Assembly: GCA_977020255.1 (NCBI GenBank) | Contig: CDROCS010000253.1 | Span: forward strand, 3,720,001 to 3,784,000 | Length of the DNA: 64,000 nt | From: Obrimoposthia wandeli | Taxonomy: Eukaryota | Direction of reading: 5' to 3' | Shown here: piece after piece, positions 14,270 to 48,190 of the stretch | Numbering within the stretch: the stretch's first letter is position 1 | Layout: each line of letters begins with the position of its first letter | Translations under genes and position numbers: made by a program | The notes under the pieces: generated by a model | Database searches by the model: none | The model's input: only the letters and a program-made list of their open reading frames with translations | Told to the model about the DNA's origin: nothing

Positions 14270-14294
14270 AATTAGGGTTTAATAACCCTCTAAG

Positions 14295-14337: not shown

Positions 14338-14435
14338 ATGTCTAAAGCTATTTCATAGCGTTCTTTGAAATCCACGCTTTTTAGTAGTACTGTAGGTAGT
14401 ACCAGTTGAAAATACAACAAAGCGGTACTACTAAA

Positions 14436-15677: not shown

Positions 15678-15752
15678 ATTATAAATGCTTTAAGTCCTTA
15701 TTCTTTTAACATTGAACAGCCTACATAGTGCCGCCCAGACAGAAAATAAGCT

Positions 15753-15789
15753 ACTGTTATTATGTGATTTAAAATAACATAATAACAGT
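15753..15789. repeat. perfect 13-bp inverted repeat downstream of the integrase
   Basis: ACTGTTATTATGT-11 nt-ACATAATAACAGT between convergent genes. Confidence 0.75.
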
Positions 15790-15895
15790 GATAGCCCGTT
15801 CTATAGCCCACAAGTAATTATCTATAATTGTAATGAATAATAGTCATTTTATTGTTTATTACTCACCATCGTAGGTTTCAATCTAGCTGATGATT

Positions 15896-29866: not shown

Positions 29867-31582
29867 CTAATCCTTATCAAGTACTTTGTCAAGTATCTGC
29901 CCTTGGGCTCCTGATGGTGCTTTAATACCGAGTACTGCTGATAACGTTACTGCAATATCGGTGGTACTCACTCGTCTATAGACCTTATCATCATCAATAT
30001 TAAATCCTGCAAAAATCAGTGGCACAAAAGTATCGTAGCCCCAAGGTGAACCATGGGTCGCCGCAACAGTTAAGCCTTCCATATCAGCAACAAAACGATG
30101 GGCTTCGAGTACAACATAAACATCGCCAGAACGGTTTTCACTGTGGTTATTAACCACTAAAGTGTGCAGATAATCTTGCGGAGTATTACCAGTTTCTATA
30201 TCGCTACTCGTTACAGCAAGCGCAACACCATCAAATTTTGAAACTTCCATAGCAACAGCCTTTTGAACTTGCTTTAACGACAGCTTACGTTCAGCAATTA
30301 AATCTCGGTCAAGGTATATGTAAGGATGAAAGTAGCTTTTTATTAGCGCAGTATCGAAGCCAAACTGTTTCTTAAGGGCTTTCATACTCGGTGCTTTATC
30401 CCATTCTTTAGGAGCAACCACATCAGTTTTCATACCTAATGACGATAAATAAGCCGGTACTTCAGCAGCGCCATGATCGGCAGATAACACGATAAGGGTA
30501 TTTTCTAAACCCACTTTTTTATCAATAAAGGTGAGTAAATTGGCTAACGTGCGGTCTAATCTCAGCATATTATCTTCAGCTTCTAAACTTGAAGGTCCAA
30601 AAATATGACTCACATAATCTGTTGATGAGAAACTTACCGATAAATAGTCAGTAACTTCGTCCTGTCCTAGCTGTTCGTTATTAACCACTGCTTTAGCAAA
30701 ATCTAACGTCAGCTCATCCCCTGCAGGGCTTAAGGTTAGAAAAGTATTGAAATAAGCATTACTCATATCGCCGTATTGATGCGGAAAAGTTCGGCCAAAA
30801 CCGGGGAATTTAGTTTCCCATGCTTGATCATCTTGTTTTGCAAATACATACTTAGCTTGAGGTTGGCTTAATTGCCAAGTTTTATCATGATATTTTTTAG
30901 TTGGTTTTGCTTCATTCCAACTTGTTACCCACTCAGGATATTTGTCATAATAATATTCACTGGTAACAAATTCTCCTGATTTTTTAGAGAACCAAAAGGC
31001 TTTACCCATATGTCCTGCCATGGAGATAGCCCCTCGGTCTTTTACTGATACGCCAAAGACTTTCGCTTTACCATTTGAGGCAATCTTTAGCTCATCGCTA
31101 AAGGTAGAAACTTGGATATTATTCGGTGAACGACCTGACGATTTTGCAGTGCGCTGTGTGGGATCTATTTCTGTTTTTTGATTAACTCCTGCATCTGCTG
31201 ATAACAATGGGTAATTAGCATCTTCAACGTTATAGACTAAACGTTGTAATTTATCATCAAACCAGACATTACCTATCATGCCATGAACTGCTGGTAATGC
31301 TCCGGTAGCAAGCGTTGCATGACCAACGATAGTTTCTGTATTAGCATGATTATGATGAGCATCTTTATAAACTATGCCTTCATCGAGCAGATATCTAAAG
31401 CCGCCTTTTCCCATTTTATCTAGATAGGCGGTTGGCATATCCCCGCGGAGCTGATCAACGGTAATTTGCAAGATGAGTTTTGGTTTATCCGCTTGAGCTA
31501 ATGCAACATTACTGCCTAAAAGTGCTGCTGTGGACAATAAAAGTCCAAGATGAGTTTTATTTTTTGTCTTTACTGTTATCAT
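29867..31582 (-). CDS. secreted alkaline phosphatase/nucleotide pyrophosphatase (PafA-like)
   Basis: signal peptide; VDQLRGD, ETIVGHATLATG (Thr nucleophile by analogy to PafA), SADHG, HGSPWGYD. Confidence 0.85.
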   Translation of the reverse strand: MITVKTKNKTHLGLLLSTAALLGSNVALAQADKPKLILQITVDQLRGDMPTAYLDKMGKGGFRYLLDEGIVYKDAHHNHANTETIVGHATLATGALPAVHGMIGNVWFDDKLQRLVYNVEDANYPLLSADAGVNQKTEIDPTQRTAKSSGRSPNNIQVSTFSDELKIASNGKAKVFGVSVKDRGAISMAGHMGKAFWFSKKSGEFVTSEYYYDKYPEWVTSWNEAKPTKKYHDKTWQLSQPQAKYVFAKQDDQAWETKFPGFGRTFPHQYGDMSNAYFNTFLTLSPAGDELTLDFAKAVVNNEQLGQDEVTDYLSVSFSSTDYVSHIFGPSSLEAEDNMLRLDRTLANLLTFIDKKVGLENTLIVLSADHGAAEVPAYLSSLGMKTDVVAPKEWDKAPSMKALKKQFGFDTALIKSYFHPYIYLDRDLIAERKLSLKQVQKAVAMEVSKFDGVALAVTSSDIETGNTPQDYLHTLVVNNHSENRSGDVYVVLEAHRFVADMEGLTVAATHGSPWGYDTFVPLIFAGFNIDDDKVYRRVSTTDIAVTLSAVLGIKAPSGAQGQILDKVLDKD

Positions 31583-32292
31583 TTTTAATAATCCTTTATC
31601 GCCTATCAGTTAACAATTACAAAATGTGAGTGTAAATACTAATACGGTTAATAGCTGTCACAGTAACAGCCTCTCCCAGTGCAGTAGAACTTTCTCAATG
31701 TCAGCCTTTTGGGTAATGATAATATCAACCAAAAAGTTTCAATAAGTTATCACGTTGCCCTATTTAATAATATGCAGGTTCCAAACACATAGGGATTTCA
31801 GGACAACAATTAATGAAAGACAAGAAAAGTGTTACCCCTAAATACTCTTTAAATCCGCAGCGATAACATTTAAATGATATGTAAAGTTAACGTCTCAAAC
31901 ACCTCCTGTGGCTTGGGTAATGGTATTTTATCTTAAAGATTCATTGTTTATTAAAGTCTTTTTTCGACAAACCATCTAGTTTATTTATTATACTGAATAT
32001 AACAATATCTTTTCGGAAATTGCATACTTAAATGTTGGCCGAGTTAATATAATGTAAAGCGACACCACATTATTTCAGTTGCTGAACAACGCAATCAAAG
32101 TTCATATATCAACAGCTGAGTATTAATCTCAGCCAAAAAACAATAAAAAATATTAAGCAAAATAGTTTGGCTAAATGAGTTGTGTCGCTAAAGTTAAGAC
32201 TATACTCAGCGTACTTACAATGGATAAGTGTTCTACCGTTACTGAATTTTCAACCTAATAATTCAAATTTTACCGTAAATAAAGGAAATACT

Positions 32293-33861
32293 ATGGAAAT
32301 GAATAACCGGCTTAAGAAATTCGCATTCGGCATAGGTCTACTTGCCATTGCCACCAACGCAGCAGCGACAACCAATAAAGCTAAGCCTAATGTTTTAGCC
32401 ATTTGGGGTGATGATATTGGTTATTACAATATCAGTGCTTATAACCAAGGTATGATGGGCTATCAAACACCTAACATCGATCGTATTGCTGATGAAGGCG
32501 CTTTGTTTACTCATCATTATGCACAACAAAGCTGTACTGCAGGCCGTGCTTCCTTCATTTTAGGTCAAGAACCCTTTAGAACAGGTTTATTAACTATTGG
32601 TATGCCCGGTTCAACACATGGCATTCCCGATTGGACACCTACCATTGCCGATTTGTTAAAAGAACAAGGTTACATGACCGCGCAATTTGGTAAAAACCAT
32701 TTAGGCGATCAAGACAAGCATTTACCGACTAATCATGGCTTTGATGAATTTTTTGGTAACTTATACCATTTAAATGCTGAAGAAGAGCCTGAAACTTATT
32801 ATTATCCTAAAGATAAAGAATTTCATAAAAAATATGGTCCTCGTGGTGTTATCCATTCCTTTGCTGATGGAAAAATCGAAAATACAGGTTCTATGACGCG
32901 TAAGCGTATGGAAACAGCTGACGGCGAATTTTTAGCGGGTACATTGAAATTTATTGATAAAGCACATAAAGCCAAAAAACCTTTCTTCATATGGCACAGT
33001 TCAACCCGTATGCACGTATGGACTCGTCTACAAGAAAAATATCGCGGTAAGTCAGGCGTAAGTCTAACAGCAGATGGTATGTTAGAGCATGATGACCAAG
33101 TAGGTATTTTACTCGATAAATTAGACGACTTAAAAATTGCTGATAATACTATTGTTATCTATTCAACCGATAATGGTGCAGAAAAATTTACTTGGCCTGA
33201 TGGCGGTACATCACCTTTTAGAGGCGAAAAAGGAACGACAACAGAAGGCGGTATGCGTGTTCCTCAACTTGTTCGCTGGCCTGGCACCATCAAAGCCGGC
33301 AGTAAATTTAATAACCTAATGTCCCATGAAGATTGGATGCCAACATTGTTAGCTGCCGCAGGCGAGACAAACATAGTTAACAAGCTTAAAAAAGGTTACA
33401 AAGCTAACGGTAAAAAATGGAAAATTCATCCAGATGGTCATAATTTCTTACCTTTCTTTAAGGGCCAAGAAAAAGCATCTCCACGTACAAGTAAATTATA
33501 CTTCAATGCCGCCGGTGATTTAAATGCCGTACGTTGGAACGAATGGAAAATTGCCTTTGCAGAAGAAGAAGGTGGTATTAGCACTGCATATCGTAAAGTT
33601 CCTGCATGGCCAACTATTACTAACTTACATGCAGATCCCTTTGAAACGGCTGCAAAAGAGTCTGGAATGTACTTACGTTGGTATGCCGATAACATGTGGT
33701 TATTTGTCCCTGCTCAACAGCAAGTTGCAGAGTTTATGTCAACCATTGACAAATTCCCTTTCCAAGAAGGTAGTAGTTTAAGTGCGAGTAATATTGGTTA
33801 TAAAAGCATTAGAACGCAGGAAGCACTTAAAAAAATACAACAATTAAGTCCTAACCGATAA
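32293..33861 (+). CDS. secreted sulfatase, Cys-type CTAGR
   Basis: signal peptide from MEMNNR; GDDIG, QSCTAGR (32533-32547), GKNHLG, TDNG; AAGGA SD before 32293. Confidence 0.92.
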   Translation: MEMNNRLKKFAFGIGLLAIATNAAATTNKAKPNVLAIWGDDIGYYNISAYNQGMMGYQTPNIDRIADEGALFTHHYAQQSCTAGRASFILGQEPFRTGLLTIGMPGSTHGIPDWTPTIADLLKEQGYMTAQFGKNHLGDQDKHLPTNHGFDEFFGNLYHLNAEEEPETYYYPKDKEFHKKYGPRGVIHSFADGKIENTGSMTRKRMETADGEFLAGTLKFIDKAHKAKKPFFIWHSSTRMHVWTRLQEKYRGKSGVSLTADGMLEHDDQVGILLDKLDDLKIADNTIVIYSTDNGAEKFTWPDGGTSPFRGEKGTTTEGGMRVPQLVRWPGTIKAGSKFNNLMSHEDWMPTLLAAAGETNIVNKLKKGYKANGKKWKIHPDGHNFLPFFKGQEKASPRTSKLYFNAAGDLNAVRWNEWKIAFAEEEGGISTAYRKVPAWPTITNLHADPFETAAKESGMYLRWYADNMWLFVPAQQQVAEFMSTIDKFPFQEGSSLSASNIGYKSIRTQEALKKIQQLSPNR

Positions 33862-33991
33862 TTATTGTTACTTAACATTAAGTTAATCATGGCTAAAGCC
33901 CAATAATTATTGGGCTTTTTTATATATACATATAATGGTCATGGTAATTAAATAAAACGCCTATGTAGTTAGCTCAGAAGCTTACTGTAAA

Positions 33992-34071
33992 CGTTATCTT
34001 CGAAGTCTCTGATCGAAGATCCATTCCTTTTTAGAAACTGGCTCCCCGACTAAGCCACCACGGGGACGACG
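33992..34071. repeat. degenerate double-hairpin REP/REPIN-like element
   Basis: CGTTATCTTCGA...TCGAAGATCCA then CTGGCTCCCCGA...CGGGGACGACG; layout resembles paired REP-type palindromes. Confidence 0.4.
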
Positions 34072-34268
34072 TCCCTGAGTCATGTGCATAGGCACGTTAA
34101 ATAAAGTGAGCGAAAAAACTAAAAACTACGTATAAGTTACGGTTAAATTATTGCATTTATAATGAAATAACATAATATTAATAATGCACTGTTCGTAATT
34201 CATACGGCCCTTGCTATTTGTTACAGCAAAATAACTAAACGTTTTTTGGTGATTAAAGGATGATCATA

Positions 34269-35807
34269 ATGATTACAAATAAATTAAAGATGTTGATGAT
34301 GGGTGCAAGTTTAATAGCTACTGCATCGGCAACCGCAGCGGACAAACCCAATATTTTATTTTTCTGGGGTGATGATATAGGACGTACAAATATCAGCGCC
34401 TACAGCCATGGTATCATGGGTTTTAAAACACCTAACATTGACCGTATCGCTAAAGAAGGCATGATGTTCACCGATTATTATGCCGATCAAAGCTGTACCG
34501 CAGGTCGTTCAACCTTTATCACTGGGCAATCAGGTTTACGTACCGGCATGACAAAGGTTGGCTTACCTGGTGCGAAAGAAGGTATTCAAGATAGAGATAT
34601 CACTATCGCAGAAATGTTAAAAGAGAAAGGTTATACCACAGGTCAATTTGGTAAAAACCACTTAGGCGACAAAGATGAGCATTTGCCATCTAACCATGGT
34701 TTTGATGAGTTTTTTGGTAACCTTTACCACTTAAACGCAGAAGAAGAGCCTGAAGATCCAGATTACCCTAAAGATCCAGCTTTTAAGAAAAAATTTGGAC
34801 CACGCGGCGTTATTCACTCTTATGCTGATGGTAAAATTGAAGATACCGGCCCTTTGACTAAAAAGCGTATGGAAACGGCTGATGACGAGTTTGTTGCCGC
34901 AGCAATGAAATTTGTTGATAAAGCAGTAAAAGCTAAAAAACCTTTCTTTGTTTGGGTAAATACTGCTGGCATGCACTTTAGAACGCATATCAACCCAAAA
35001 CATGTTGGCCTTTCAGGTCAAGGGTTCTATAACGATGTGATGGTCGCTCACGATAATCATGTTGGCATGATGTTAGATCAACTGGATAAGTTGAAAATTA
35101 CTGACAATACCATTGTCATGTACTCTACCGATAATGGCGTACATTACAATACTTGGCCTGATGCGGGTATTACCCCGTTTGCAGGTGAAAAAAATAGCGA
35201 AAAAGAAGGTGCTTACCGTGTTCCTATGATGGTGCGCTGGCCTGGTAAAATTAAATCGGGTGAAGTTTCAAACGAAATGATGGCTCATTTGGATTGGATG
35301 CCCACCTTAGCCGCAGTTGCTGGTGACACTAAGCTGAAACAAGATATGCTTCAAGGCAAACGTCGTTTTGGTAATAAACAATCAAAAATTCATCTAGATG
35401 GCTATAACATGTTACCTCTCCTTACAGGTAAGTCAGAAAAGAGTCCACGTAACATTTATCATTATTTAAATGATGAAGGTTTCCCTGTTGCCATTCGTGT
35501 TGGTGATTGGAAAATGGTTTATGCCGAAAATCGTGGTAAAACGCTGGCATTATGGACTGAACCTTTCACCATGTTAAGAATGCCTAAAATCTTTAACTTA
35601 CGTCGTGATCCGTGGAGTAGAGCAGAAGAAAACTCTAATTCTTACTACGATTGGATGATTGATAAAGCACCCTATATCTATTTAGGTTTATCAGAAACGG
35701 CTAAGTTTTTATCAACCTTTAAAGACTATCCACCTAGCCAACCTACCGGCTCTTGGTCAGTTGAAGTGGTATATGATACGTTCTTGAAAAAGTCTGAAGG
35801 TAAATAA
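34269..35807 (+). CDS. second secreted sulfatase, Cys-type CTAGR (paralog of 32293)
   Basis: GDDIG, QSCTAGR (34494-34508), GKNHLG, EFFGNLYHLNAEEEPE shared with paralog; start 34269 fits AAGGA spacing. Confidence 0.92.
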   Translation: MITNKLKMLMMGASLIATASATAADKPNILFFWGDDIGRTNISAYSHGIMGFKTPNIDRIAKEGMMFTDYYADQSCTAGRSTFITGQSGLRTGMTKVGLPGAKEGIQDRDITIAEMLKEKGYTTGQFGKNHLGDKDEHLPSNHGFDEFFGNLYHLNAEEEPEDPDYPKDPAFKKKFGPRGVIHSYADGKIEDTGPLTKKRMETADDEFVAAAMKFVDKAVKAKKPFFVWVNTAGMHFRTHINPKHVGLSGQGFYNDVMVAHDNHVGMMLDQLDKLKITDNTIVMYSTDNGVHYNTWPDAGITPFAGEKNSEKEGAYRVPMMVRWPGKIKSGEVSNEMMAHLDWMPTLAAVAGDTKLKQDMLQGKRRFGNKQSKIHLDGYNMLPLLTGKSEKSPRNIYHYLNDEGFPVAIRVGDWKMVYAENRGKTLALWTEPFTMLRMPKIFNLRRDPWSRAEENSNSYYDWMIDKAPYIYLGLSETAKFLSTFKDYPPSQPTGSWSVEVVYDTFLKKSEGK

Positions 35808-35925
35808 CTTTAAACATGAATTAATTTAATAGCCCGATCACTTTCGTTTCGGGCTTTTTTAATTAGTAATATTCATAGGTATTAACTTCATTACTGAACT
35901 AAGCAATTTAATTTAGGTAAAAAAC

Positions 35926-38208
35926 ATTAAAACTCTACTTTTTATTTTCAGTTTATTGGTACTGTCTTTTAGCAGTGATGCTTTAGAATTTGTCGGTTCT
36001 AAAGCCTGTATCAGCTGCCATGAAGAAGCCTATCAAGCTTGGCAAGGCTCTCACCATGATATGTCGATGAAACATGCTAATAGTGAAAGTATTTTAGGCG
36101 ATTTTAATAACGCCACGTTAGCCTTTAAAGATAAACGCACAGTAAAACCAAATAAATTCTTTAAAAAAGGTCCGCAATTCTGGGTCAATATTCAAGGTGA
36201 TGATGGGCTGTTTCACAACTATCAAATTAAATATACTTTTGGCTACAAACCGCTACAACAATACATGGTCGAATTTGATGATGGTCGAGTTCAACTGATA
36301 CCATTCGCTTGGGATTCTCGCATAAAAGAAAAAGGCGGACAACGTTGGTTTAACCTCTACCCTGAGATGACTAAAAAGCATCAAGAGTTCTTTTGGACCA
36401 ATACTGGCCAAAACTGGAATTATATGTGCGCTGATTGTCATTCAACTAATGTAGATAAGAACTTTGATGTAAAAACAAATACCTACAATACGACTTTTAG
36501 TGAAATCAATGTTGCTTGTGAAAGTTGCCATGGTGCAGCCAGTGAACATTTAACTTGGGCTAAGCAATCTAAAAATAAATTTGAAAACACAAAAAACAAC
36601 ATGCCATTAGATGGCAAAGGCTTTAGCCGTGATTTATCAAAATCGGTACAGAAATGGCAAGCAAGCGACAATAAAAAAACCTTAACACCACAAAATATTG
36701 ATCATAGCCAACAAGTATTAGTGTGTGCTCAATGTCATAGCAGACGCACTCAGATAAGTAATAACAATCACGTCGAAGGTAATGCTTTCGGTGAACGCTA
36801 CTTACTCGATTTAATTTCAAGCACTAATTATCACCCTGATGGCCAAGTGTATAACGAAAACTTTGTTTATGGCTCATTTCTACAATCGAAAATGTACAAA
36901 AATGGTGTGGTCTGTACCGATTGTCATAACCCGCATACTGCAGAATTAAAACTTCCAGTAGAGACACTTTGTTTACAGTGTCATCTGGCCAATAACTACG
37001 CTTCAAAAGAACATCATAAACATCCAGAAAATTCTTCAGGTGCACAATGTGTTAATTGTCATATGCCCGAAACAACCTATATGGAAATTGACGCTAGACG
37101 CGATCATGGTTTTCATATCCCAACACCAAACTTAGCAAAACAGCTAGGCACGCCCGATACCTGTTTAAGTTGTCATGAAGATAACGATAGTCAATGGAGT
37201 ACCAATAAAGTTAAGTCGTGGTACCCAAATTCAACGGTCAAAGAAGAAAAAGATTTTACCGCTGTTTTCTCTGCTATTAACATACAGTTAAATGAGCAAC
37301 AACTGCAAGGCGTGGCTTCAGAGTTATCTCGTATATCTCAAACCATCAGTTATGCTGGCATTATCCGCGCTTCTGCATTAACCAAAATGGCGAGCGTATC
37401 CAATACCAATACTATTATTGCTATTGCCAGGGCGGTTAAAAACCCTGATGAGAATATACGATTAGGCGCAATTGAAGGCGCACAAAATATGGCAAGCGCT
37501 GAAAAGTGGCGCATTTTATCCCCCTTATTAAACGACAAAGTTCTAACGGTAAGAATTAATACCGCTTTTGCATTGACCAGTTTGTGGCAAAACTTGTCCG
37601 TACCACAAAGAGAACAATTAACACCTGCTCTGAATGAATATATAGCAAGTCAGAATTTTAATAGCGATCGTAGTTTTTCTCATTCTAATCGGGGGATTAT
37701 TGCTGCTTATCAAGGTCAATATGACCAAGCTATAAAAGCCTTTAAGCAAGGCATAGCAATAGAAAAAAACTTTTCTCGAACGTATCTCAATTTGAGTCAA
37801 GTGTATTATCAACGAGGCGAAAACCAAAAAAGTATTGAAACGTTACAACAAGGAAAGTTAGCAAACCCTGATGATGCTAGCCTGCCTTATAATCTGGGAC
37901 TCGCCTATATTAGGATTAAAGCTAAAGCTAAAGCGGCTGATGCGTTAGCCATTGCCACACAACTTGCACCACAAAATAGTCATTATTTTTATGTCTATGG
38001 CTTAAGTTTAGAGCAGCATAAGCCGAGTGCAGCTTATAAAGCCTTATATCAAGCATTTCAACTGAGTAATAACCCACAACATTTATATGCGTTATGTGAC
38101 ATGCAAGTCCGTCATAAAAGCCCATTAGCAAAACAATGTTTGGGGGAGTTGACACCTCTAGTACCTAGTAATGTGATTGAAGCACTTAGACAACAGCTAA
38201 AGAGTTAG
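35926..38208 (+). CDS. octaheme c-type cytochrome fused to HEAT/TPR-like repeats, exported (start uncertain: ATT 35926 or TTG 35956)
   Basis: eight CxxCH: CISCH, CADCH, CESCH, CAQCH, CTDCH, CLQCH, CVNCH, CLSCH; C-terminal TPR-like repeats. Confidence 0.88.
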   Translation: MKTLLFIFSLLVLSFSSDALEFVGSKACISCHEEAYQAWQGSHHDMSMKHANSESILGDFNNATLAFKDKRTVKPNKFFKKGPQFWVNIQGDDGLFHNYQIKYTFGYKPLQQYMVEFDDGRVQLIPFAWDSRIKEKGGQRWFNLYPEMTKKHQEFFWTNTGQNWNYMCADCHSTNVDKNFDVKTNTYNTTFSEINVACESCHGAASEHLTWAKQSKNKFENTKNNMPLDGKGFSRDLSKSVQKWQASDNKKTLTPQNIDHSQQVLVCAQCHSRRTQISNNNHVEGNAFGERYLLDLISSTNYHPDGQVYNENFVYGSFLQSKMYKNGVVCTDCHNPHTAELKLPVETLCLQCHLANNYASKEHHKHPENSSGAQCVNCHMPETTYMEIDARRDHGFHIPTPNLAKQLGTPDTCLSCHEDNDSQWSTNKVKSWYPNSTVKEEKDFTAVFSAINIQLNEQQLQGVASELSRISQTISYAGIIRASALTKMASVSNTNTIIAIARAVKNPDENIRLGAIEGAQNMASAEKWRILSPLLNDKVLTVRINTAFALTSLWQNLSVPQREQLTPALNEYIASQNFNSDRSFSHSNRGIIAAYQGQYDQAIKAFKQGIAIEKNFSRTYLNLSQVYYQRGENQKSIETLQQGKLANPDDASLPYNLGLAYIRIKAKAKAADALAIATQLAPQNSHYFYVYGLSLEQHKPSAAYKALYQAFQLSNNPQHLYALCDMQVRHKSPLAKQCLGELTPLVPSNVIEALRQQLKS

Positions 38209-38262
38209 CAACCAATGTAACTAAAACAACGAATATAACATTAAAAATAAAGGGATTATTTT

Positions 38263-39261
38263 ATGAGTGATCAAGAGAATGACTTATCCAATGGTGAGTC
38301 TACTGCTCTAGCGCAGTTGCAGTTATTAAAAGCACAAATTGAGCAATCAGTTATTGGTCAGTCGCATGTTGTTGACTCTCTGCTTATTGCTTTATTAACA
38401 AATGGTAATATTTTATTAGAAGGTTTACCTGGCACAGCAAAAACCCGTTCGATTAAAACCTTAGCGCGTTCCCTTGCTGTTGATCTAGGCCGCGTACAAT
38501 TCACACCAGACTTATTACCTTCTGATGTCACAGGTACAGAAGTTTACCAAGAAGTTAATGGCAAACCCGTGCTCACTTTTCAACAAGGTCCAATATTTAA
38601 TAATTTATTACTTGCCGATGAAATCAATAGATCGCCCGCCAAAGTACAAGCAGCTCTATTAGAGGCGATGGAAGAAAGACAAATCACTGTTGCCGGTAAG
38701 ACCTACAAATTACCTGAATTATTTATGGTATTAGCGACCCAAAATCCTATAGAGCAAGAAGGAACTTACCCGTTACCTGAAGCACAAATGGATCGATTCA
38801 TCATGAAAATTAATCTTGATTACCCTGATGATGCTGCTGAAGCTGTCATAATAAAACTAGTTCGTAGCGAAGAAAAGAACGTTCAATCGGTTGAAAACAT
38901 CAGTCCTGAACATATTTTTACCGCTCGAGATGAAATTCATAATATCCATTGTAGCCAAGCTATCATTGATTACATTGTTGCCATTGTTATGGCAACTAGA
39001 AAGCCAGAGCGTTATCCTGACTCACCTTTACAACAATGGTTAACGGTTGGCTCAAGTCCAAGAGCAAGTATCGCTATTGATAAATGTGCCCGCGCACAAG
39101 CATGGCTAAACGGAAAAAATTTTGTTGATCCTGATGATGTGCGCTCTGTTGCACACTCAGTACTACGCCATCGTTTAGTGCTGAGTTATGACGCTTTAGC
39201 TGACGGTATTACGGCTGATGCTGTAATAGATGAAATACTCAAACAGGTGGCTGTTGCCTAG
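38263..39261 (+). CDS. MoxR family AAA+ ATPase
   Basis: GLPGTAKT, QFTPDLLPSD, ADEINR, ATQNPIEQEGTYPLPEAQMDRF. Confidence 0.95.
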   Translation: MSDQENDLSNGESTALAQLQLLKAQIEQSVIGQSHVVDSLLIALLTNGNILLEGLPGTAKTRSIKTLARSLAVDLGRVQFTPDLLPSDVTGTEVYQEVNGKPVLTFQQGPIFNNLLLADEINRSPAKVQAALLEAMEERQITVAGKTYKLPELFMVLATQNPIEQEGTYPLPEAQMDRFIMKINLDYPDDAAEAVIIKLVRSEEKNVQSVENISPEHIFTARDEIHNIHCSQAIIDYIVAIVMATRKPERYPDSPLQQWLTVGSSPRASIAIDKCARAQAWLNGKNFVDPDDVRSVAHSVLRHRLVLSYDALADGITADAVIDEILKQVAVA

Positions 39262-39269
39262 GGGGTCTC

Positions 39270-40319
39270 ATGAGCGACAGCACTCCTGATAATAAAGATA
39301 ACACTAGCGGTTTGTCTAAAAACTTATCTAAAGACACGTCAGCAATTTACGCTGACTTAAATGAATTACGTCGATTAAAATATTTAGCAAAAGGTTTTTC
39401 ATTTAGCCCTAACCAACCAGCAAATAGTGCCTTAAGCGGTAAAAACGCTTCTAAACTTCGTGGTCGCGGACTGAATTTTGAAGAACTTCGCCATTATCGC
39501 CCTGGCGATGATATTCGTTCGATGGATTGGAAAGTCACGCAAAGAACCGGAAAACCCCATATTAAGGTGTTCACCGAGGAGCGAGAACGCAATGTTTTCT
39601 TAGCTATAGATCAACGGATGACAATGTTCTTTGGTAGCTCAAATAAAATGAAATCTGTGATTGCCGCTGAACTTGCTGCACTAATCGCTTGGCAAATAAG
39701 TGATAGTGGCGATCGCATTGGTGCGGTCATTTACAATGATCAACAAACTAAAGTTATTCCCGCTAAGCGTGGCAGACAACATGTTGTCAATTTGCTCGCT
39801 GAAGTATTGAAGAAAAACCACGAATTATCTTTAGACACATCGATTAAAAATAATGCTAACCAGCAAATTGATGATAGCGATTCCTATAATAAAATGTTGG
39901 CTACCTTACATAAAGTATCAAGTCATAATGGTTTAATTATTTTAATTGGTGATGGCCATGGTTTTAACGATAAAAGTACTGATTTTATTAAGCAGTTAAG
40001 ACAGCACAATGAAGTGATTGCTTGTCATATTTTTGATCCCTTAGAGCAGAAATTACCAAGAATGTCACAAATGATTGTGAGTGATGGTGTGCAACAAATT
40101 CAGTTTTCTTCTGAGAATAAACAGGTTCAAAAAAATTATGAAGCTGAAATAGCTCGCCAGCTAGAAAGTTACGTTAAAGCGGCTAAAAAATATCGTATCC
40201 CGTTAATTGAAATCGATACTATTGCCCCTGTTGAGCAGCAATTGCGCAAAGCCCTTGGTCACAGAACCCTTAGTAAAGGTGGAACTAAAACAGGATCTAC
40301 CGCAGGAGTAAGTAAATGA
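39270..40319 (+). CDS. DUF58 domain protein
   Basis: GLNFEELRHYRPGDDIRSMDWKVT, EERER. Confidence 0.92.
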   Translation: MSDSTPDNKDNTSGLSKNLSKDTSAIYADLNELRRLKYLAKGFSFSPNQPANSALSGKNASKLRGRGLNFEELRHYRPGDDIRSMDWKVTQRTGKPHIKVFTEERERNVFLAIDQRMTMFFGSSNKMKSVIAAELAALIAWQISDSGDRIGAVIYNDQQTKVIPAKRGRQHVVNLLAEVLKKNHELSLDTSIKNNANQQIDDSDSYNKMLATLHKVSSHNGLIILIGDGHGFNDKSTDFIKQLRQHNEVIACHIFDPLEQKLPRMSQMIVSDGVQQIQFSSENKQVQKNYEAEIARQLESYVKAAKKYRIPLIEIDTIAPVEQQLRKALGHRTLSKGGTKTGSTAGVSK

Positions 40320-40969
40320 GCTTTGAAAAACCTTGGGGAAATTATTTACTTGAAGCTATTGTTGAAACAAAAGTGCCTGATACGGTCAGCTTTTGGCCAC
40401 AAACAATAGCTTGGCAACTCCTTTTTATTTTAATGATAATGCTTATTATCAAGAAAAGTTATCACTCATGGAAAAATTACCAAGCTAACGCTTATCGCCG
40501 CGAAGCCCTTTTTTGGCTTGATCAATGTTCTCTTTCAAACGAAGAAGATGTTAGGCAGTTACCTGCGCTACTTAGAAAAACAGCGATTCTTGCCAACCAA
40601 GGTTTCATAAATGAGATCGGCCCACTTACTGACAAGGTAAATAGTAATAAAAGTGTGATAAAGCGTCGGCAAGAAATCACTAATCTCACTGGGCAAGCCT
40701 GGGTAGAATGGTTAGATAAATATTGTGGTAAAAGTAACTTTAATGAAAAAAAATCACAGACCACCGCTAATCCATATTCTTGTGCAAAGTTACTTGCCCA
40801 ACTTGCCTATGTCCCTAACGTAGATATTACTAACAATCAGCTTAATGAAGCATTAATACAACTCATGCAACAAATTGAATTATGGATTACTTACCATGAA
40901 CTAGGTCATGAATTGAGCACTGAGTCTGAGTCTGAGTCTGAACAAGTATCTTCGGGAGAAACGACATGA
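40316..40969 (+). CDS. DUF4381-like membrane protein of MoxR/Bat operons
   Basis: FWPQTIAW + TM + YRREAL; overlaps DUF58 stop. Confidence 0.8.
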   Translation: MSFEKPWGNYLLEAIVETKVPDTVSFWPQTIAWQLLFILMIMLIIKKSYHSWKNYQANAYRREALFWLDQCSLSNEEDVRQLPALLRKTAILANQGFINEIGPLTDKVNSNKSVIKRRQEITNLTGQAWVEWLDKYCGKSNFNEKKSQTTANPYSCAKLLAQLAYVPNVDITNNQLNEALIQLMQQIELWITYHELGHELSTESESESEQVSSGETT

Positions 40970-42057
40970 TCGAGTTTGTTTATCCCTGGGCATTTGTATT
41001 ACTTATAGTCCCTTTTGCGGTAACACTGTTTGCACCAGATTATAAAGAGAGCAAGTCATCGATCAAAGTGCCCTACTTTGCGAATCTTGTTGATGTCACC
41101 GGCGAAAAACCACAAAGAGGCGCCGTACTACTCAATCGTAATAATTTGCAACGACTCATTGTTGCTTTCTCATGGCTTTGCATTGTCACCGCCATAGCTA
41201 AGCCTGAAATGATTGGTGAACCGATTAGCCAAGAAAAATCTGCACGAGATTTAATGATAGCAGTCGATTTATCAGGTTCAATGTCGGTTGAAGACTTTAC
41301 CTTACCAGATGTTAAAGCTAGCTCAAAAAAGGGTACTAATGACAATGTCCAACATAACAACGGCACAACCAAAACTGAACAAGTTAATCGCTTGGTCGCT
41401 GTTAAGCATGTACTCAATACCTTTGTCAAAACTCGCGAACATGACAGATTAGGGCTTATCCTTTTTGGTGATGCTCCTTATCTGCAAGCACCTTTTACTG
41501 ATGACATAGTCACATGGCAAACTTTACTGAACGAAAGTGATATCGGTATGGCTGGTCAAAGTACTGCTTTTGGCGATGCTATTGGTTTAGCCATCAGTGT
41601 TTTTGAACAATCTGATACCAAAAACCGCGTGTTAATTGTGTTAACTGATGGCAATGATACTGGTTCAAAAGTTCCACCGGTAGAAGCTGCTAAAGTAGCG
41701 GCGGCACATGATATAAAAATATATACCATAGCGATTGGCGATCCAACGGCCGTAGGCGAAGAAAAAGTAGATCTTGAAGTATTAGCTGAAATGGCTGAAG
41801 TAACACAAGGCATGAGTTTCCAAGCACTTAACAGTGATGAATTGTTGGCCGTTTATGCAGAGATTGATCAACTTGAGCCGCAACAGTTTGACTCACTATC
41901 CTTCAGGCCAAGGGTTAGTATTCATCACTACCCTATCATATTATTTGTCAGTATTTACCTGTTGGCTTTATTTAGTGTCAATATTCGCATCCGTCTACAA
42001 TTAGCCAAGCAGCGTAATTTAAGTAGCTCAGTTACCAAGGAGGTACTTCATGATTGA
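40966..42057 (+). CDS. VWA domain protein (BatA-like)
   Basis: MIDAS DLSGSM, DRLGLILFG, TAFGDAIG, LTDG. Confidence 0.92.
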   Translation: MIEFVYPWAFVLLIVPFAVTLFAPDYKESKSSIKVPYFANLVDVTGEKPQRGAVLLNRNNLQRLIVAFSWLCIVTAIAKPEMIGEPISQEKSARDLMIAVDLSGSMSVEDFTLPDVKASSKKGTNDNVQHNNGTTKTEQVNRLVAVKHVLNTFVKTREHDRLGLILFGDAPYLQAPFTDDIVTWQTLLNESDIGMAGQSTAFGDAIGLAISVFEQSDTKNRVLIVLTDGNDTGSKVPPVEAAKVAAAHDIKIYTIAIGDPTAVGEEKVDLEVLAEMAEVTQGMSFQALNSDELLAVYAEIDQLEPQQFDSLSFRPRVSIHHYPIILFVSIYLLALFSVNIRIRLQLAKQRNLSSSVTKEVLHD

Positions 42058-43039
42058 TGATCTCTCGCTATTTTTTAATAGCATGCAACACTTTCATTTT
42101 CTACGCCCTTATTGGTTGCTAGCATTCATCATTATTGTTTACATCATTCGAACATTCTCACTACGCGATGATAGTTTAGCGCAATGGCGGTCTTTAATGT
42201 CAGCTCAAGTATTGTCGCATCTAACGGTGAACGGTAATAATAACAATTGGTTGTCACCACAAAAAATGTCAGTCATCTTAGCTATCCCGCTTTGCATTGT
42301 GCTCATGGGGCCTACTTGGCAACAGCAAGCCTCACCTTTTAGTGAGAATAATGCACCGCTTATTATTGCGCTTGATGTATCAAAAACGATGGAACAAAAT
42401 GATGTACAGCCATCAAGGTTATTACGTGCAAAACAAAAAATAATCGAATTACTTGCACTCAGGGGCGACAGTAAAACAGCGCTCATTGCCTTTGCTGGCA
42501 GTGCGCATGTCGTAATGCCGATAACCAATGACAGAGAGATGATCCGACACTTTCTTGATGCATTATCTGAAGAAATAATGCCTGTTTCCGGTAAGTTGCC
42601 TGAAACCATTATTCCTTTAGTTGATAATTTATTGGCTTCTTCTCCCGTTCCCGGCACTGTTTTATTAATTGGAGATGGCGCAACCAGTAATACAGTCGCT
42701 GCCTTTAAAATATTTTTTGACAAACAAGCCGCTCAGTTGCTTGTTTGGGGCATAGGAAAATCAACAGAGTCTGAAGAAAAGTCAGATGAATTGACTACTA
42801 ATATCATTCCATTACAACTTGAGCAGTTAAAAGCATTAAAAAATGAGAGTAATGGTCGCCTGATCTTGATGAGTAATGACAATAATGATGTTAATCGCGT
42901 GAATAACTACATTAAACACAACCTTGTTATTGTTGATGATAATAGTAGACCATGGCATGACTCTGGTTATCCTATGGTGCTTGTTGTAGCGGGTATTTTC
43001 TTATTCTGGTTTAGAAAAGGATGGACACTGCAATGGTAA
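42050..43039 (+). CDS. VWA domain protein (BatB-like)
   Basis: HFLRPYW, DVSKTM, PSRLLRAKQK, ALIAFAG. Confidence 0.9.
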   Translation: MIDDLSLFFNSMQHFHFLRPYWLLAFIIIVYIIRTFSLRDDSLAQWRSLMSAQVLSHLTVNGNNNNWLSPQKMSVILAIPLCIVLMGPTWQQQASPFSENNAPLIIALDVSKTMEQNDVQPSRLLRAKQKIIELLALRGDSKTALIAFAGSAHVVMPITNDREMIRHFLDALSEEIMPVSGKLPETIIPLVDNLLASSPVPGTVLLIGDGATSNTVAAFKIFFDKQAAQLLVWGIGKSTESEEKSDELTTNIIPLQLEQLKALKNESNGRLILMSNDNNDVNRVNNYIKHNLVIVDDNSRPWHDSGYPMVLVVAGIFLFWFRKGWTLQW

Positions 43040-43812
43040 AATCAAATCAAACACATTGGTTTAACTTTTCAGCACAAGTAAACCAACGGCCATATTTTAA
43101 TAAATATCGCCTTAATAAAAAATGGTTAATTATTACCTTCGTCATCGCAAGTTGCCTCTTTGCCTATGTAAAACCACAACAATTTGCCGACTTATGGCTT
43201 ACACGTGATCAACAAGGACAAGTACTGTTTAATTTGGGTGATTACCAACAAGCAAGCAACACATTTAAAAGCACACAATGGCAAGCTTATAGTAGCTATG
43301 GCGCTGAGCAGTATAAAAATGCAGCCACCCTTTATGGTCAATTTACAGATGTCGATAACCAAATAGCCAAAGCAAATGCCCTTGCCCATGGCCGCGAATA
43401 CATAAATGCACGCAATATATATCAACAGATACTAATAATAGATCCAGAAAATTTAGCCGCTAGCACCAACATCGTTATTGTTCAGACCATTATTGATGAA
43501 GTGAACCGAATGTCTGAAAGTCAGGCACCGGAAGATGGAGAGTCGATAAAAGAGTTGGGTGACGAACCACAAACAGGCGACGGCGCCGAACAGAATGAAG
43601 CACCAAAAGAGCAAGAAATAGAACAGCTCAGTGCTGAACAACTGCTACTTGACCCGAGTTTAAATGAAATGTGGTTAAGACAGGTACAGAAAAACCCTGC
43701 TAATTTTTTATCGCAAAAATTTTACATGCAACAAACTATTAAGAATAAAAAGGATAATCAAAAAATAAATAGCGATAAAAGTGGTAATAACAAAGGAGCT
43801 AATGATGAATAA
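43033..43812 (+). CDS. TPR protein (BatC-like)
   Basis: TM then TPR-like helices and acidic linker; ATG 43033 overlaps upstream stop. Confidence 0.8.
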   Translation: MVKSNQTHWFNFSAQVNQRPYFNKYRLNKKWLIITFVIASCLFAYVKPQQFADLWLTRDQQGQVLFNLGDYQQASNTFKSTQWQAYSSYGAEQYKNAATLYGQFTDVDNQIAKANALAHGREYINARNIYQQILIIDPENLAASTNIVIVQTIIDEVNRMSESQAPEDGESIKELGDEPQTGDGAEQNEAPKEQEIEQLSAEQLLLDPSLNEMWLRQVQKNPANFLSQKFYMQQTIKNKKDNQKINSDKSGNNKGANDE

Positions 43813-45202
43813 CAAACTTATTCAACTACTGACATTTATTGCCATTATATGCCAGCTAACGGTAATTCCAACCGTAACTGCGGCTCAAAACATCGAAGAT
43901 TTAGTCAATCAAGATAAGTTAACTATTAGTCTTGAGGTCAATCAAAAAGAACAACAAGTAGTGGGCCAAGCCCTCATACTGGCTATCGAAATTTCAACAG
44001 ACCGATGGTTTGCTACTGGTAGCAAAATTCAGCCTTTCACCTTGAAAAACGTTGTAATGCAAGCAAACAACACTACAACGATCAATGGCAACAAACGTAT
44101 CAATGGTCAAACATGGGCAACACAAACTCATGAAATCACCCTATACCCAACTGAATCAGGTGCTTATCAAGTTCCTCCAATAACGATGAATATATCCGTT
44201 AACACAAAAAACGATGGCATCGTTAGCGGCGTACTCAGTACTCAAGAAAGTAGTTTTAATATTGAATTACCTCAAGCACTTGAAGGTATTAAATATTTTA
44301 TCGTATCATCACAGGTAACTCTGAGTATTGATGGTTTATTTGATGAAGAAAAAGACTATGCTGTAGGTGAAGCAATCACGCAGACCATAACAATTACAGC
44401 CAGTGATACACCAGCAATGATGATAACGCCAATTAACTTGGTAGCGAATAATTTAGAGGTTACTGATCTAACACCGGATGATAAATCGACGGATAATAAG
44501 CTGGCGAGTAATAAAACCACGTTAGATGGGATCAGCATTTATCACAAACCTGCGCAAGTTTTTGATAAGTCTAATCGAGGTACCTTATTAGGTACTCGGG
44601 TAGAGTCTTTTACTTATATTTTTGAAAAGCCGGGACATTATGTAATCGATGAACAAGTTATCTACTGGTGGAATAGCCAAAGCAACACACTGGAGCGTTT
44701 GTTGATTCCATCATCCAAATGGACAGTTTCTGACGGAGGCTTAGGCCGAATTAGCTCATTTCATACTTTAACAGCGTTTAACATCACTATTGAAACAGTA
44801 ATACCTATTATTATCGTGATAGTGTTACTCATGCTTATTTCTATAGGGTTTATAAAGCGTTATTATTTATCTGCTCTATATAACAAATTCACTAAACGCG
44901 AACAAAGGTTACTGCGTAGTAAATTTTTAAATGCGGTAAACCAAAAGAGCTACTTAAGTGCAACGCAATACCTCTACCAATATGCCTTATTACAAAATAA
45001 AAAAACGTTCACCGCAAGCTGCCCGCAATCTGTCACATTAAATAAATTAGCTTTCAACGTAAACAATGTAGAAAAGGTACCGCTAAGCTTTACTGTTAAC
45101 GAAGCTGAGGCTCTAATTAGTGAAATTGATGCAAGTACATCTAAAAAAGAAGGAACAGCTAATTTCATTCCTAACGAGCGCATTAAGCTTAACAGAGACT
45201 AA
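43802..45202 (+). CDS. BatD-like membrane-anchored protein
   Basis: signal peptide, beta-rich region, C-terminal TM; last gene of the MoxR operon; start overlaps upstream stop. Confidence 0.75.
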   Translation: MMNNKLIQLLTFIAIICQLTVIPTVTAAQNIEDLVNQDKLTISLEVNQKEQQVVGQALILAIEISTDRWFATGSKIQPFTLKNVVMQANNTTTINGNKRINGQTWATQTHEITLYPTESGAYQVPPITMNISVNTKNDGIVSGVLSTQESSFNIELPQALEGIKYFIVSSQVTLSIDGLFDEEKDYAVGEAITQTITITASDTPAMMITPINLVANNLEVTDLTPDDKSTDNKLASNKTTLDGISIYHKPAQVFDKSNRGTLLGTRVESFTYIFEKPGHYVIDEQVIYWWNSQSNTLERLLIPSSKWTVSDGGLGRISSFHTLTAFNITIETVIPIIIVIVLLMLISIGFIKRYYLSALYNKFTKREQRLLRSKFLNAVNQKSYLSATQYLYQYALLQNKKTFTASCPQSVTLNKLAFNVNNVEKVPLSFTVNEAEALISEIDASTSKKEGTANFIPNERIKLNRD

Positions 45203-45294
45203 GTAGGCATGAATAGATGACAGTCATTAACTGTAATCAATTAATCCGTTTGGTATAAGTCAATATAGGACGACTTAAAACATTTTTTACCCAT

Positions 45295-45331
45295 AAAAAA
45301 CCCGTATTAGCTTTCACTAATACGGGTTTTA
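45295..45331. terminator. bidirectional terminator between batD-like and ihfA
   Basis: AAAAAACCCGTATTAG-ctttca-CTAATACGGGTTTTT. Confidence 0.85.
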
Positions 45332-45454
45332 TTATTTTACTTTATTTTAACAAGTACTGAGTCACCTACAGAATAAGGAACTATAACTGAATAATAAAAT
45401 TACTCAGTTTAATTTAGCGAAATGAACATTCCTTATTTTAGTCGCTATATTTAT

Positions 45455-45748
45455 TTAGTCACTATTTCCGTCTTCTACACGGCTTTTCAGTTTTTGGCCT
45501 GGTCTAAAGGTAACCACTTTACGGGCAGAGATTGGAATATCTTCACCCGTTTTAGGATTACGTCCAGGACGCTCGCTTTTTAAACGTAGGTCGAAATTAC
45601 CAAAACCTGAAAGCTTAACTTGATCACCACTTTCTAAGGTTTCGCGAATTTCTTCAAAGAAGATTTCAACCATGTCTTTTGCGTCGCGCTTGCTCAGCCC
45701 AACTTTTTCAAATAAATGTTCTGCTACTTCTGCTTTGGTAAGCGCCAT
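45455..45748 (-). CDS. ihfA: integration host factor alpha
   Basis: [25 protein letters not shown]. Confidence 0.98.
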
Positions 45749-45751
45749 TGC

Positions 45752-48190
45752 TTAGTCCCTCAGTGATGCATTTAATTCTGTTTTTAATGTTGCAACAACT
45801 CTATCAATAACATCTGTGATGTCTTTTTCTTCAAGAGTTTTACTGGTGTCTTGTAATACTAGGGCTATGGCTAGACTTTTGAAACCGTCATCAATGCCTT
45901 GACCTTTGTATACATCAAATAAGTTTAGATCAATTAAATAATTTCCGCCAACCTTTTCAATAAGTTGTAACACTTTTTTTGCATCAACGTCTTCTTTAAC
46001 GACTATTGCTAAGTCTCGACGATTAGCAGGAAAGCGAGAGATATCAGTGGCTTCAGGGATTTTTTGCACTAAGACCTCAGACAATAATAGCTCGAAAATT
46101 AATGTGCGGCCGTTTAAGCCTAATTTTCTTTCTAATTCAGGATGTAAGGTTCCAACACAACCGACAAAAACACCATTCTTAGTAATTTGTGCCGTTTGAC
46201 CCGGATGTAAAGCATCAACTTCAGCTTTTGAAAACTCATAACCCTGTGCATCACAAGTCAGTGCCAATAAAGCTTCAACATCACCTTTAATATCATAAAA
46301 ATCAGTTGCCGCTTTTTCCATACTCCAATGTTCATCAACACGAAGACCACTGATAACACCCGCGATCATATTTTGTTGACGAACACCATTTTCTGCATTC
46401 TCATCTGGCACAAAACGCAAGCCAGTTTCAAATAAGCGTATTCGGCCTTGCTGACGGTTTTGATTATAAACCATCGACTGTAATAAACCGGTCCATAAAC
46501 TTAGGCGCATTACCGACATTTCAGAAGAGATGGGGTGTGGTAACGTCATCACCTCTTGTCCTGGATGTAATAAGGCTTGTACTTTTGGGTCAACAAAACT
46601 GTAAGTGATCGCTTCTTGGTAATCACGATTTACTAAGGTTTGTTTTAAGTTTGATAAAGAAAGCTTAGCTTCTTTTTTCTCACACATTTTCAAGGTTGCT
46701 TTTGGCGCAATATTTGGAATATTGTTATAGCCAAAAATACGCGCCACTTCTTCAATTAAATCAACTTCGATTTTAATATCAAAACGATAAGCAGCCACAA
46801 TTACTTGCCATACTTTAGCTACGCCTTCGCCTGTTGTACTAACAGTAAAACCAAGACGGGTAAGAATTTCACTTACTTGTGCATCTTCAATATGATGACC
46901 AATACGACTATCTAACATTTTACGACGTAAATTTACGTCTTTTGTTTGCGGAATGTTAGCGTCAGATTTAGCTTCAACAACGGGACCTGCTTGACCACCA
47001 ACAATGGTTAGTAACAGTTCAGTCGCTCGCTCTATTGCATCATGCTGTAACGTTGGGTCTATACCTCGTTCATAACGATGTGAAGAGTCGGTATGTAAGC
47101 CGTATTGACGTGCTTTACCTAAGATAGCTAACGGTGCAAAAAATGCACTTTCTAAAAATATATCAGTAGTGTTATTGGTAACACCTGATTCAAGACCACC
47201 AAAGATACCAGCCATGGCTAATGCTTTGCCATTACCGTCAACACCAGTATCAGCAATAACTAAAGTACCTTCTTTCAACGTAACTTCATTTTCATCTAAT
47301 AACGTTAACTTTTCGTCTTTATTAGCGAAACGTACATTAATGCCACCCTCTAACTTAGCTAAATCGAAAGCATGCATTGGATGACCCAATTCAAGTAAGA
47401 TGTAGTTAGTTACATCAACAACAGGGTCTATTGAACGTGTACCACAACGACGAAGCTTTTCGACCATCCAAAGTGGTGTCGTTGCATTAGGGTTAATGCC
47501 CTTAATAACACGACCTAAGTAACGAGGACATGCTTCAACCGCATCAATATTGATAGCTAATGCATCATCAATCGTTGGCACTACAGCTGTAATGGTTGGC
47601 TCAGTAACTTCTAAAGAGTTTAATACACCTACTTCACGTGCTAAGCCTTTAAGACCTAAACAATCACCACGGTTAGCCGTTAAATCAACATCAATAGTCA
47701 CGTCATTTAAATCTAAATATTCACGTACACATTGACCTAATGGCGCGTCATTGGCTAACTCCATAATGCCATCTGAGTCATCGGCCAAACCAATTTCAGA
47801 TTCACTACACAACATACCAAAAGAAGGTACACCACGTAATTTTGCTTTTTTGATTTTAAAATCGCCAGGTAGTACCGCGCCCACAGTTGCAACCGCTACT
47901 TTTAAACCTAAACGACAGTTTTTAGCACCACAAACGATATCAACTAACTCGCCTTTTTCTACCGTAGTAGAACTGTAATCGCCTAAACTAATTTTTGTTA
48001 CTTGTAACTTATCAGCATCAGGGTGTGGTCCACATTCAACCACTTCACCAATAACAACACCGCTAAACTCGCCCGCTACGGGGTCAACACCGTCAACCTC
48101 TAAGCCAGCCATTGTTATTTGATGTGCTAAATCATCAGAAGAAAGTGCAGGATTAACCCACTCACGTAACCAAGATTCACTAAATTTCAT
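45752..48190 (-). CDS. pheT: phenylalanine--tRNA ligase beta subunit
   Basis: [32 protein letters not shown]-like RYERG. Confidence 0.98.

Follow-up and report, generated by a model that had tools for sequence, protein, structure and literature searches.

Why should genes for two exported sulfatases, a multihaem cytochrome and a MoxR-class ATPase with its membrane partners lie together? The question is raised by a cluster at positions 32293-45202, forward strand, of a 64-kb stretch of contig CDROCS010000253.1 (Obrimoposthia wandeli assembly GCA_977020255.1), referred to here as the window. Sequence comparison identifies the cluster as a Colwellia copy of a neighbourhood conserved among marine gammaproteobacteria, of which no prior description was found; literature searches did not return a published account of an association of sulfatase, octaheme cytochrome and MoxR genes. 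The neighbourhood may serve the biogenesis of periplasmic sulfatases. Its genes in the window are as follows.

32293..33861 (+): Sulf1, predicted Sec-exported Cys-type S1 sulfatase; PF00884 E 6e-49; motif QQSCTAGRASF
34260..35807 (+): Sulf2, predicted Sec-exported Cys-type S1 sulfatase; PF00884 E 3e-47; motif DQSCTAGRSTF
35926..38208 (+): octaheme c-type cytochrome, OcwA-like haem domain with C-terminal HEAT/TPR repeats; probable ATT start
38263..39261 (+): MoxR-class AAA+ ATPase, cytoplasmic; AAA_3 PF07726 E 4.4e-61, AAA_lid_2
39270..40319 (+): DUF58 (VWA-like) protein, counterpart of MxaS; PF01882 E 4.2e-45, weak VWA matches
40316..40969 (+): DUF4381 single-pass membrane protein; PF14316 E 1.6e-21; one transmembrane-like segment
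40966..42057 (+): BatA-like membrane-anchored VWA protein; VWA_2 and VWA; NCBIfam BatA-like 5.6e-46, below cut-off; transmembrane segments
42050..43039 (+): BatB-like membrane-anchored VWA protein; VWA_2 E 2.3e-11; NCBIfam BatB-like below cut-off; transmembrane segments
43021..43812 (+): short TPR (BatC-like) protein; weak TPR_2 match, E 4.8e-5; position kept in relatives
43802..45202 (+): BatD-like protein, signal peptide and C-terminal transmembrane segment; PF13584 at 26.2 bits against a cut-off of 24.1

Ten genes in one shared orientation had been read here by the first-pass annotation of the window, and the open reading frame (ORF) list together with Pfam returned every one of them. Both sulfatases carry PF00884, a signal peptide and the sequence SCTAGR, in agreement with the two exported Cys-type CxAxR sulfatases of that annotation. 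The exported protein to which eight CxxCH motifs and TPR-like repeats had been assigned has exactly eight such motifs and TPR/HEAT repeats, and the MoxR, DUF58, DUF4381, two VWA, TPR and BatD-like genes were all recovered, the TPR gene by a weak match only. Stop/start overlaps, described for the last six genes, occur at the five junctions from DUF58 to BatD, and MoxR is spaced 8 nt from DUF58. The batD ORF opens at GTG 43781, and ATG 43802 is preceded by AGGAG; the homologues of its product bear the name BatD. With a MoxR AAA_3 ATPase, DUF58, two membrane-anchored VWA proteins and BatD, the cluster contains a tight Bat-type unit. An NCBIfam scan of the cluster proteins gave no equivalog-level names, and no BatE (SH3)-like ORF was found ahead of the terminator after batD.

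Linkage of the modules across genomes

The association was assessed starting from the cytochrome. A cytochrome profile found 502 relatives in contigs taken from one genome per species, the best 80 loci were taken with 10-kb flanks, and linkage was counted at the 68 loci having at least 4 kb on both sides of the cytochrome. At least one sulfatase of the SCTAGR family lay within 10 kb of the cytochrome at 58 of these loci, and at 52/68 a co-oriented MoxR operon started no more than 600 bp after the cytochrome stop codon. Sulfatase and MoxR together accompanied the cytochrome at 53 of the 68 informative loci, and the phylogenetic linkage of all three modules, which the first-pass annotation had set as a test, was thus borne out. 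Five loci had only the sulfatase and two only MoxR.

The linked loci come from at least seven gammaproteobacterial families and include Colwelliaceae, Alteromonadaceae, Vibrionaceae, Shewanellaceae, Psychromonas, Cellvibrionales and an Oceanospirillaceae metagenome-assembled genome (MAG). Among the Vibrionaceae the cluster occurs in Vibrio, Aliivibrio and Photobacterium, and the genetically tractable Aliivibrio fischeri ES114 (locus L047, NC_006840.2 at about 1,568,000-1,590,200) holds the full set. Across the linked taxa cytochrome identity drops to 47-50%, and gene order and orientation vary by lineage; the pattern recurs on L170 and the P0115 contig, metagenomic contigs that were found independently. 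Wherever the motif was readable, the linked family sulfatases have SCTAGR, save for an extra SSTAGR (Ser-type) paralogue at three Vibrio loci. At these loci, from three Vibrio species (L049, L066 and L067, about 12200-16140), a LysR regulator, the SSTAGR sulfatase and then a radical-SAM/SPASM anaerobic sulfatase-maturating enzyme (anSME) are encoded between cytochrome and moxR. The slot upstream of the cytochrome always has sulfatases or sulfatase-related genes as its cargo, with one to three sulfatases among Colwellia, and the Sulf2 orthologue sits right before the cytochrome in Vibrionaceae as well. An NPP phosphodiesterase gene is found near the cluster at 10 of 18 Colwellia loci and at many Vibrionaceae loci.

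A fourth module, a protein folded like the formylglycine-generating enzyme (FGE), joins the others in several partial arrangements. Sulfatase, FGE-like protein and cytochrome occur without MoxR at L022, L029, L032 and L170 (Cellvibrionales and the metagenomic contig L170). A BatD homologue search gave 133 matches, only to Colwellia-like proteins, though two distant members proved useful. Among the neighbours of BatD homologues, sulfatase, CxxC-containing FGE-like protein and MoxR to BatD were found without the cytochrome at L087 and L088, and the FGE-like protein with MoxR to BatD, without sulfatase or cytochrome, at L089. A Thalassotalea locus (L031) has the cytochrome and MoxR to BatD, with no sulfatase within 10 kb. 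Since the modules recombine in differing arrangements, the linkage itself appears to be under selection rather than to descend as one inherited block. No one module is the hub; the four recurrently associate. At L089 a PhoX phosphatase gene (13990-15300) lies 2.7 kb downstream of the FGE-like to BatD unit, a further case of a Ca-dependent hydrolase of the periplasm encoded close to a Bat-type operon.

Bat-type MoxR/VWA operons were described in 1999 and, to our knowledge, have been given no defined function since. The octaheme-TPR cytochromes are a large family bearing only automatic names, and the way in which marine CxAxR sulfatases gain activity is a common but unexplained matter. The neighbourhood gives all three concrete, testable partners across at least seven families.

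Sulfatases, cytochrome and FGE-fold protein

Sulf1 and Sulf2 are predicted to be formylglycine-dependent S1 sulfatases. The metal and catalytic residues of both (DD, K/H, H, DN, K) align with those of PsFucS1 (7AJ0) and GALNS (4FDI), and the nearest solved structure to Sulf1 is PsFucS1, a subfamily S1_13 enzyme from Pseudoalteromonas (E 4.9e-55). Like the two sulfatases of the window, PsFucS1 has a motif without proline (CTSSR, compared with CTAGR) and the same catalytic residues; it is Ca2+-dependent, and its cysteine was unmodified after production in E. coli (PMC8484680). CxAxR is a known minority sulfatase motif, the proline being mostly replaced by alanine (PMC5066984), and the SCTAGR family is large (88 of about 110 motif-bearing top representatives). 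SCTAGR sulfatases also occur in other contexts, with DUF1254/DUF1214 genes or, as at L085, with a canonical cytoplasmic FGE encoded immediately before them. An SCTAGR sulfatase of 584 amino acids, on a metagenomic contig of 59 kb (P0131), is encoded just upstream of small and large terminase and capsid genes, and looks phage-carried.

No ORF for an FGE or an anSME was found in the window, as the first-pass annotation had stated. Queries for canonical FGE, the FGE-like protein and anSME, run against the 64 kb by tblastn, gave a best E of 0.3, none of the window ORFs of at least 200 amino acids contained CxxxCxxC, and Pfam returned no maturase from 40 window ORFs. The broader statement that such systems have no known maturase had to be given up, as the Vibrionaceae and Shewanella versions of the cluster carry an anSME, an enzyme for which maturation of CxAxR and Ser-type sulfatases is published (PMC2459300). 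Given a known minority motif, an anSME that matures CxAxR, and anSME or FGE genes as neighbours in relatives, the SCTAGR motif would require no new enzyme.

In C. demingiae, the closest relative, and at 16 further loci from genomes, Sulf2 and the cytochrome are separated by a third SCTAGR sulfatase gene and a gene for a PF03781 FGE-fold protein. At these 17 loci, on L170 and on the P0115 contig, the FGE-fold stop codon abuts or overlaps the cytochrome start. The FGE-fold protein is periplasmic, carrying a signal peptide or, in Vibrionaceae, a lipobox. The catalytic Cys pair (GGSxxCxxxxC) is missing from it, with RGGGYEFSA where the canonical FGE of L085 has KGGSFLCAPNYC. In this it resembles pFGE (SUMF2), the inactive paralogue of FGE (SUMF1); it differs from FGE and pFGE in being periplasmic and in having the ligand-binding TvpA (2Y3C, E 1e-25) as its best solved relative, ahead of true FGEs. 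Two subfamilies can be told apart. In the one translationally coupled to the cytochrome, an invariant CxxC immediately precedes PVNNxSW and no anSME is nearby; that of Vibrionaceae and Shewanella has no CxxC and adjoins an anSME gene. Relatives thus bring anSME (the AtsB/AslB type) and FGE-fold protein into the same neighbourhood, and the window encodes none of FGE, anSME and pFGE. The third sulfatase and the FGE-like gene are absent from the window and from L008, L009, L010, L017, L019 and L026, and by comparison with its Colwellia relatives, most of which hold the FGE-like gene, the window has evidently lost it. A metagenome scan from the FGE-like protein gave generic FGE-fold (TvpA/DGR-type) genes at 33-47% identity with no MoxR or sulfatase neighbours, and was uninformative on the subfamily; the sole exception is L090, where the FGE-like gene adjoins a gene for anSME and a weaker match to the cytochrome profile. 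Another metagenomic contig (L111, 1337-17137) contains ten tandem paralogous FGE-fold genes.

The best protein matches of the cytochrome are Colwellia proteins at 86-87% identity. All eight of its CxxCH motifs are invariant in 92 homologues, in which eight further histidines outside the motifs are invariant or nearly so and no CxxCK occurs. As many conserved histidines lie outside the motifs as there are haems, and CxxCK is absent, which suggests that no haem is free for catalysis; a bis-His electron wire would fit the haem ligation better than a catalytic haem. An AlphaFold2 model from the 92 sequences (pLDDT 82, pTM 0.84) superseded one from 12 sequences, whose haem domain stayed below pLDDT 50. 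OcwA (6I5B) is the sole haem protein among the 50 best fold matches of the model (TM-score 0.51 by target), the others being TPR proteins, and OcwA is also the top solved sequence match (E 1.7e-13). A surface cytochrome with nine haems from Thermincola potens, OcwA is a member of the NrfA-type multihaem superfamily (PMC6703420). The multiple CxxCH motifs and OcwA-like packing place the cytochrome of the window with such NrfA/OcwA-type proteins, to which it is related at about 16% identity to OcwA. It differs from OcwA in having eight haems rather than nine, in being periplasmic and gammaproteobacterial, in the fusion to some 300 residues of HEAT/TPR, and in showing no sign of an open-coordination haem.

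Export of the cytochrome depends on the choice of start codon. The first ATG, GTG or TTG of the ORF (35956) falls within the signal peptide seen in all homologues. The frame is open from 35917, and ATT 35926, eight bases past AGG, would yield MKTLLFIFSLLVLSFSSDA. The sequence ATT-AAA-ACT and the sequence upstream of it are also present in Candidatus Colwellia aromaticivorans (L026, 9962-10000), where the cytochrome is 70% identical. Because no standard start gives the signal peptide and the ATT context is kept in L026, ATT 35926 is the probable natural start codon (window 35914-35958). The cytochrome family is very large, with more than 7,000 word-sharing matches and many Atlas clusters, and some of its members are solitary. 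In one Alteromonadaceae genome (L021 and L027, both on CANMXU010000006.1) some 15 kb separate two cytochrome-TPR paralogues, of which one is inside a full cluster of sulfatase, FGE-like and MoxR genes and the other solitary beside a two-component system and pheT.

The arrangement of the ten genes into transcription units was predicted from three terminators.

33895..33924 (+): intrinsic terminator after Sulf1; 10-bp stem, -12.7 kcal/mol, U6 tail, z -3.1
35831..35860 (+): intrinsic terminator after Sulf2; -13.2 kcal/mol, U6 tail, z -4.0
45297..45330 (+): intrinsic terminator closing the cytochrome-MoxR-BatD unit; 14-bp stem, -19 kcal/mol, z -6.5

The hairpin that had been noticed behind each sulfatase gene is in both cases a real intrinsic terminator by folding energy, U6 tail and shuffling, none of 200 shuffles folding equally well. 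The genes Sulf1 and Sulf2 are about 400 bp apart, and the 54 nt from the cytochrome stop to the moxR start are unstructured and free of terminators. Since terminators end each sulfatase gene, none lies between cytochrome and moxR and one follows batD, three transcription units are predicted: Sulf1, Sulf2, and an eight-gene unit from cytochrome to BatD. The earlier reading of one ten-gene operon with stepped expression was dropped because of the terminator after each sulfatase gene; separate monocistronic sulfatase units fit better. The cytochrome gene appears to head the MoxR operon.

The DNA of Sulf1 and Sulf2 (window 32237-35810) is 88-91% identical to 5478-8722 of the Colwellia MAG L010, whereas the cytochrome/MoxR and phosphodiesterase flanks are only 70-75% identical between the two. 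Because of this difference, terminator-bounded sulfatase cassettes seem to have been swapped horizontally among Colwellia. A stretch of 150 bp in the spacer between Sulf1 and Sulf2 (33948-34098) is 82% identical, inverted, to the region after batD in Colwellia sp. 75C3 (L033, 19141-19291), and may be a small dispersed repeat.

A possible role in sulfatase biogenesis

Our preferred reading, held tentatively and at somewhat less than an even chance, is that the neighbourhood is an accessory system for the biogenesis of periplasmic sulfatases in which MoxR/Bat would act like MxaRSACKL. The accessory set would consist of the octaheme cytochrome, with HEAT/TPR as its docking domain, and a seven-gene MoxR-DUF58-DUF4381-BatA-BatB-TPR-BatD inner-membrane machine. 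It stands beside paralogous Sec-exported SCTAGR (S1_13-like) sulfatases, and in most relatives it also takes in the periplasmic FGE-fold protein without the Cys pair. By analogy, the MoxR/VWA machine would use cytoplasmic ATP hydrolysis to remodel the exported sulfatases or load them with Ca2+, and the neighbouring NPP phosphodiesterase is perhaps also a client. The Cys-to-formylglycine step would most likely be left to a conventional maturase, either the in-cluster anSME or, in the organism of the window, an enzyme encoded elsewhere, and the neighbourhood is not necessarily the missing formylglycine-forming enzyme. The cytochrome would be an electron-transfer protein tethered to the assembly through its TPR domain; it could feed electrons into, or draw them from, a step that the sulfatase cysteine undergoes in the periplasm.

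The precedent is the Mxa system, in which MxaR (MoxR), MxaS, MxaC and MxaL (VWA), MxaA and MxaK are jointly needed for Ca2+ insertion into periplasmic methanol dehydrogenase (PMC12276312). The two have in common a MoxR ATPase, DUF58/VWA, another pair of VWA proteins, small partners in the membrane or periplasm, and the position beside the genes of a Ca2+-type periplasmic enzyme and a cytochrome; the likeness is drawn through that publication and not by alignment. The clients here, in contrast, would be hydrolases (S1 sulfatases, possibly NPP), for which an electron acceptor is not needed, and in place of cytochrome cL there is an octaheme-TPR fusion. The BatI (Bacteroides aerotolerance) operons of Bacteroidota and Spirochaetes, MoxR-DUF58-BatA-BatB-BatC-BatD, share their gene set and order with the window, where a weakly matching TPR gene stands in the place of BatC, and have the same membrane-anchored VWA proteins, but the operon of the window is without BatE, is headed by an octaheme cytochrome and is tied to sulfatases. 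If MoxR/Bat does load metal into sulfatases or mature them, this would explain the poor heterologous expression of many marine sulfatases and would extend the methanol-dehydrogenase paradigm to hydrolases.

Several points weigh against sulfatase biogenesis as the role. Neither sulfatase nor MoxR was found at 8 of the 68 cytochrome loci. Loci were sampled through the cytochrome, and a linkage of MoxR and sulfatase independent of it rests on only L087-L089. At none of the Colwellia loci was an anSME or canonical FGE seen in the 10-kb flanks, and a Colwellia anSME was absent among the best 120 of 8,000 profile candidates, a weak negative that leaves the formylglycine step unexplained in this clade; these best 120 matches include Moritella, Psychromonas, Agarivorans and Klebsiella. 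Metal insertion, moreover, does not explain the retained multihaem cytochrome. Bat operons are widespread without sulfatases, and we know of no experiment tying any Bat-type operon to sulfatases. According to a Leptospira study, Bat proteins have yet to be given a demonstrated specific function (PMC3557215).

Unlikely, though with more in its favour than the explanations that follow, is that the cytochrome-MoxR-Bat unit is a general module of periplasmic redox or envelope homeostasis, the sulfatases being co-regulated or oxidation-sensitive rather than specific clients. This is in keeping with the original 'aerotolerance' idea, in which the periplasm receives reducing power through Bat proteins. 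The wide spread of Bat-type operons of undefined function would agree with such a module, as would the cytochrome at the head of the operon with its 54-nt gap, the Thalassotalea locus and the solitary members of the very large cytochrome family. However, a general module does not account for adjacent cargo that always belongs to one sulfatase family, nor for the triads of sulfatase, FGE-like protein and cytochrome without MoxR, nor for sulfatase, FGE-like protein and MoxR without the cytochrome.

Mere adjacency, with the gap between phosphodiesterase and cytochrome as an insertion hotspot gathering mobile sulfatase cassettes, we consider improbable. The variation from one to three sulfatases in the slot among Colwellia and the identity of the Sulf1/Sulf2 DNA to L010, higher than that of its flanks, are what a hotspot would produce. 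Diverse cargo would then be expected, yet it always consists of SCTAGR sulfatases or sulfatase-related genes, and the association recurs in distant families with other gene orders and orientations.

A third, periplasmic route of maturation was considered in two forms. In one, a sharpened version of the proposal in the first-pass annotation, the octaheme cytochrome would perform or drive the post-export oxidation of the SCTAGR cysteine to formylglycine, in relatives with the FGE-fold protein as partner, and MoxR/VWA would remodel the client. In the other, the octaheme-TPR protein would be the redox core that makes or keeps formylglycine after Sec export, the CxxC FGE-fold protein of most relatives would be an adaptor and MoxR/Bat would load Ca2+; if true, the widespread Bat operon would thereby gain a defined client for the first time. 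Conversion of Cys to formylglycine is a two-electron oxidation, for which a haem wire would be a plausible acceptor. The FGE-fold gene with its coupled stop and start between sulfatase and cytochrome, the CxxC subfamily where no anSME is nearby as opposed to the CxxC-less one adjoining anSME, the lack of a Colwellia anSME among the best 120 profile matches and the unmodified PsFucS1 from E. coli would all agree with it. We nevertheless judge both forms very doubtful, each the least probable of the explanations weighed here, since the window lacks the FGE-like gene, Vibrionaceae retain the cytochrome despite having anSME, CxxC FGE-like genes stand directly upstream of MoxR without any cytochrome (L087-L089), the nearest solved relative of the FGE-like protein is a non-enzyme, TvpA, and the conserved histidines suggest no open catalytic haem. 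It also counts against this route that the 'third route' evidence comes from E. coli, a species in which the cluster genes are not known to occur.

Flanking genes

Upstream of the sulfatases the window encodes the NPP phosphodiesterase considered above as a possible client.

29867..31582 (-): secreted type I phosphodiesterase/NPP of the alkaline-phosphatase superfamily; PF01663 E 5.5e-39; signal peptide; divergent from Sulf1

Rfam gave no match over 31000-46000. The cluster was also considered as an anti-phage MoxR-VWA defence system, a reading that was rejected, PADLOC having returned no match for the eight proteins of the cytochrome-to-BatD unit. Further upstream, a phage-type tyrosine integrase gene (window 14607-15677) adjoins ORFs without a Pfam match at 17637-19226 and 19459-20454.

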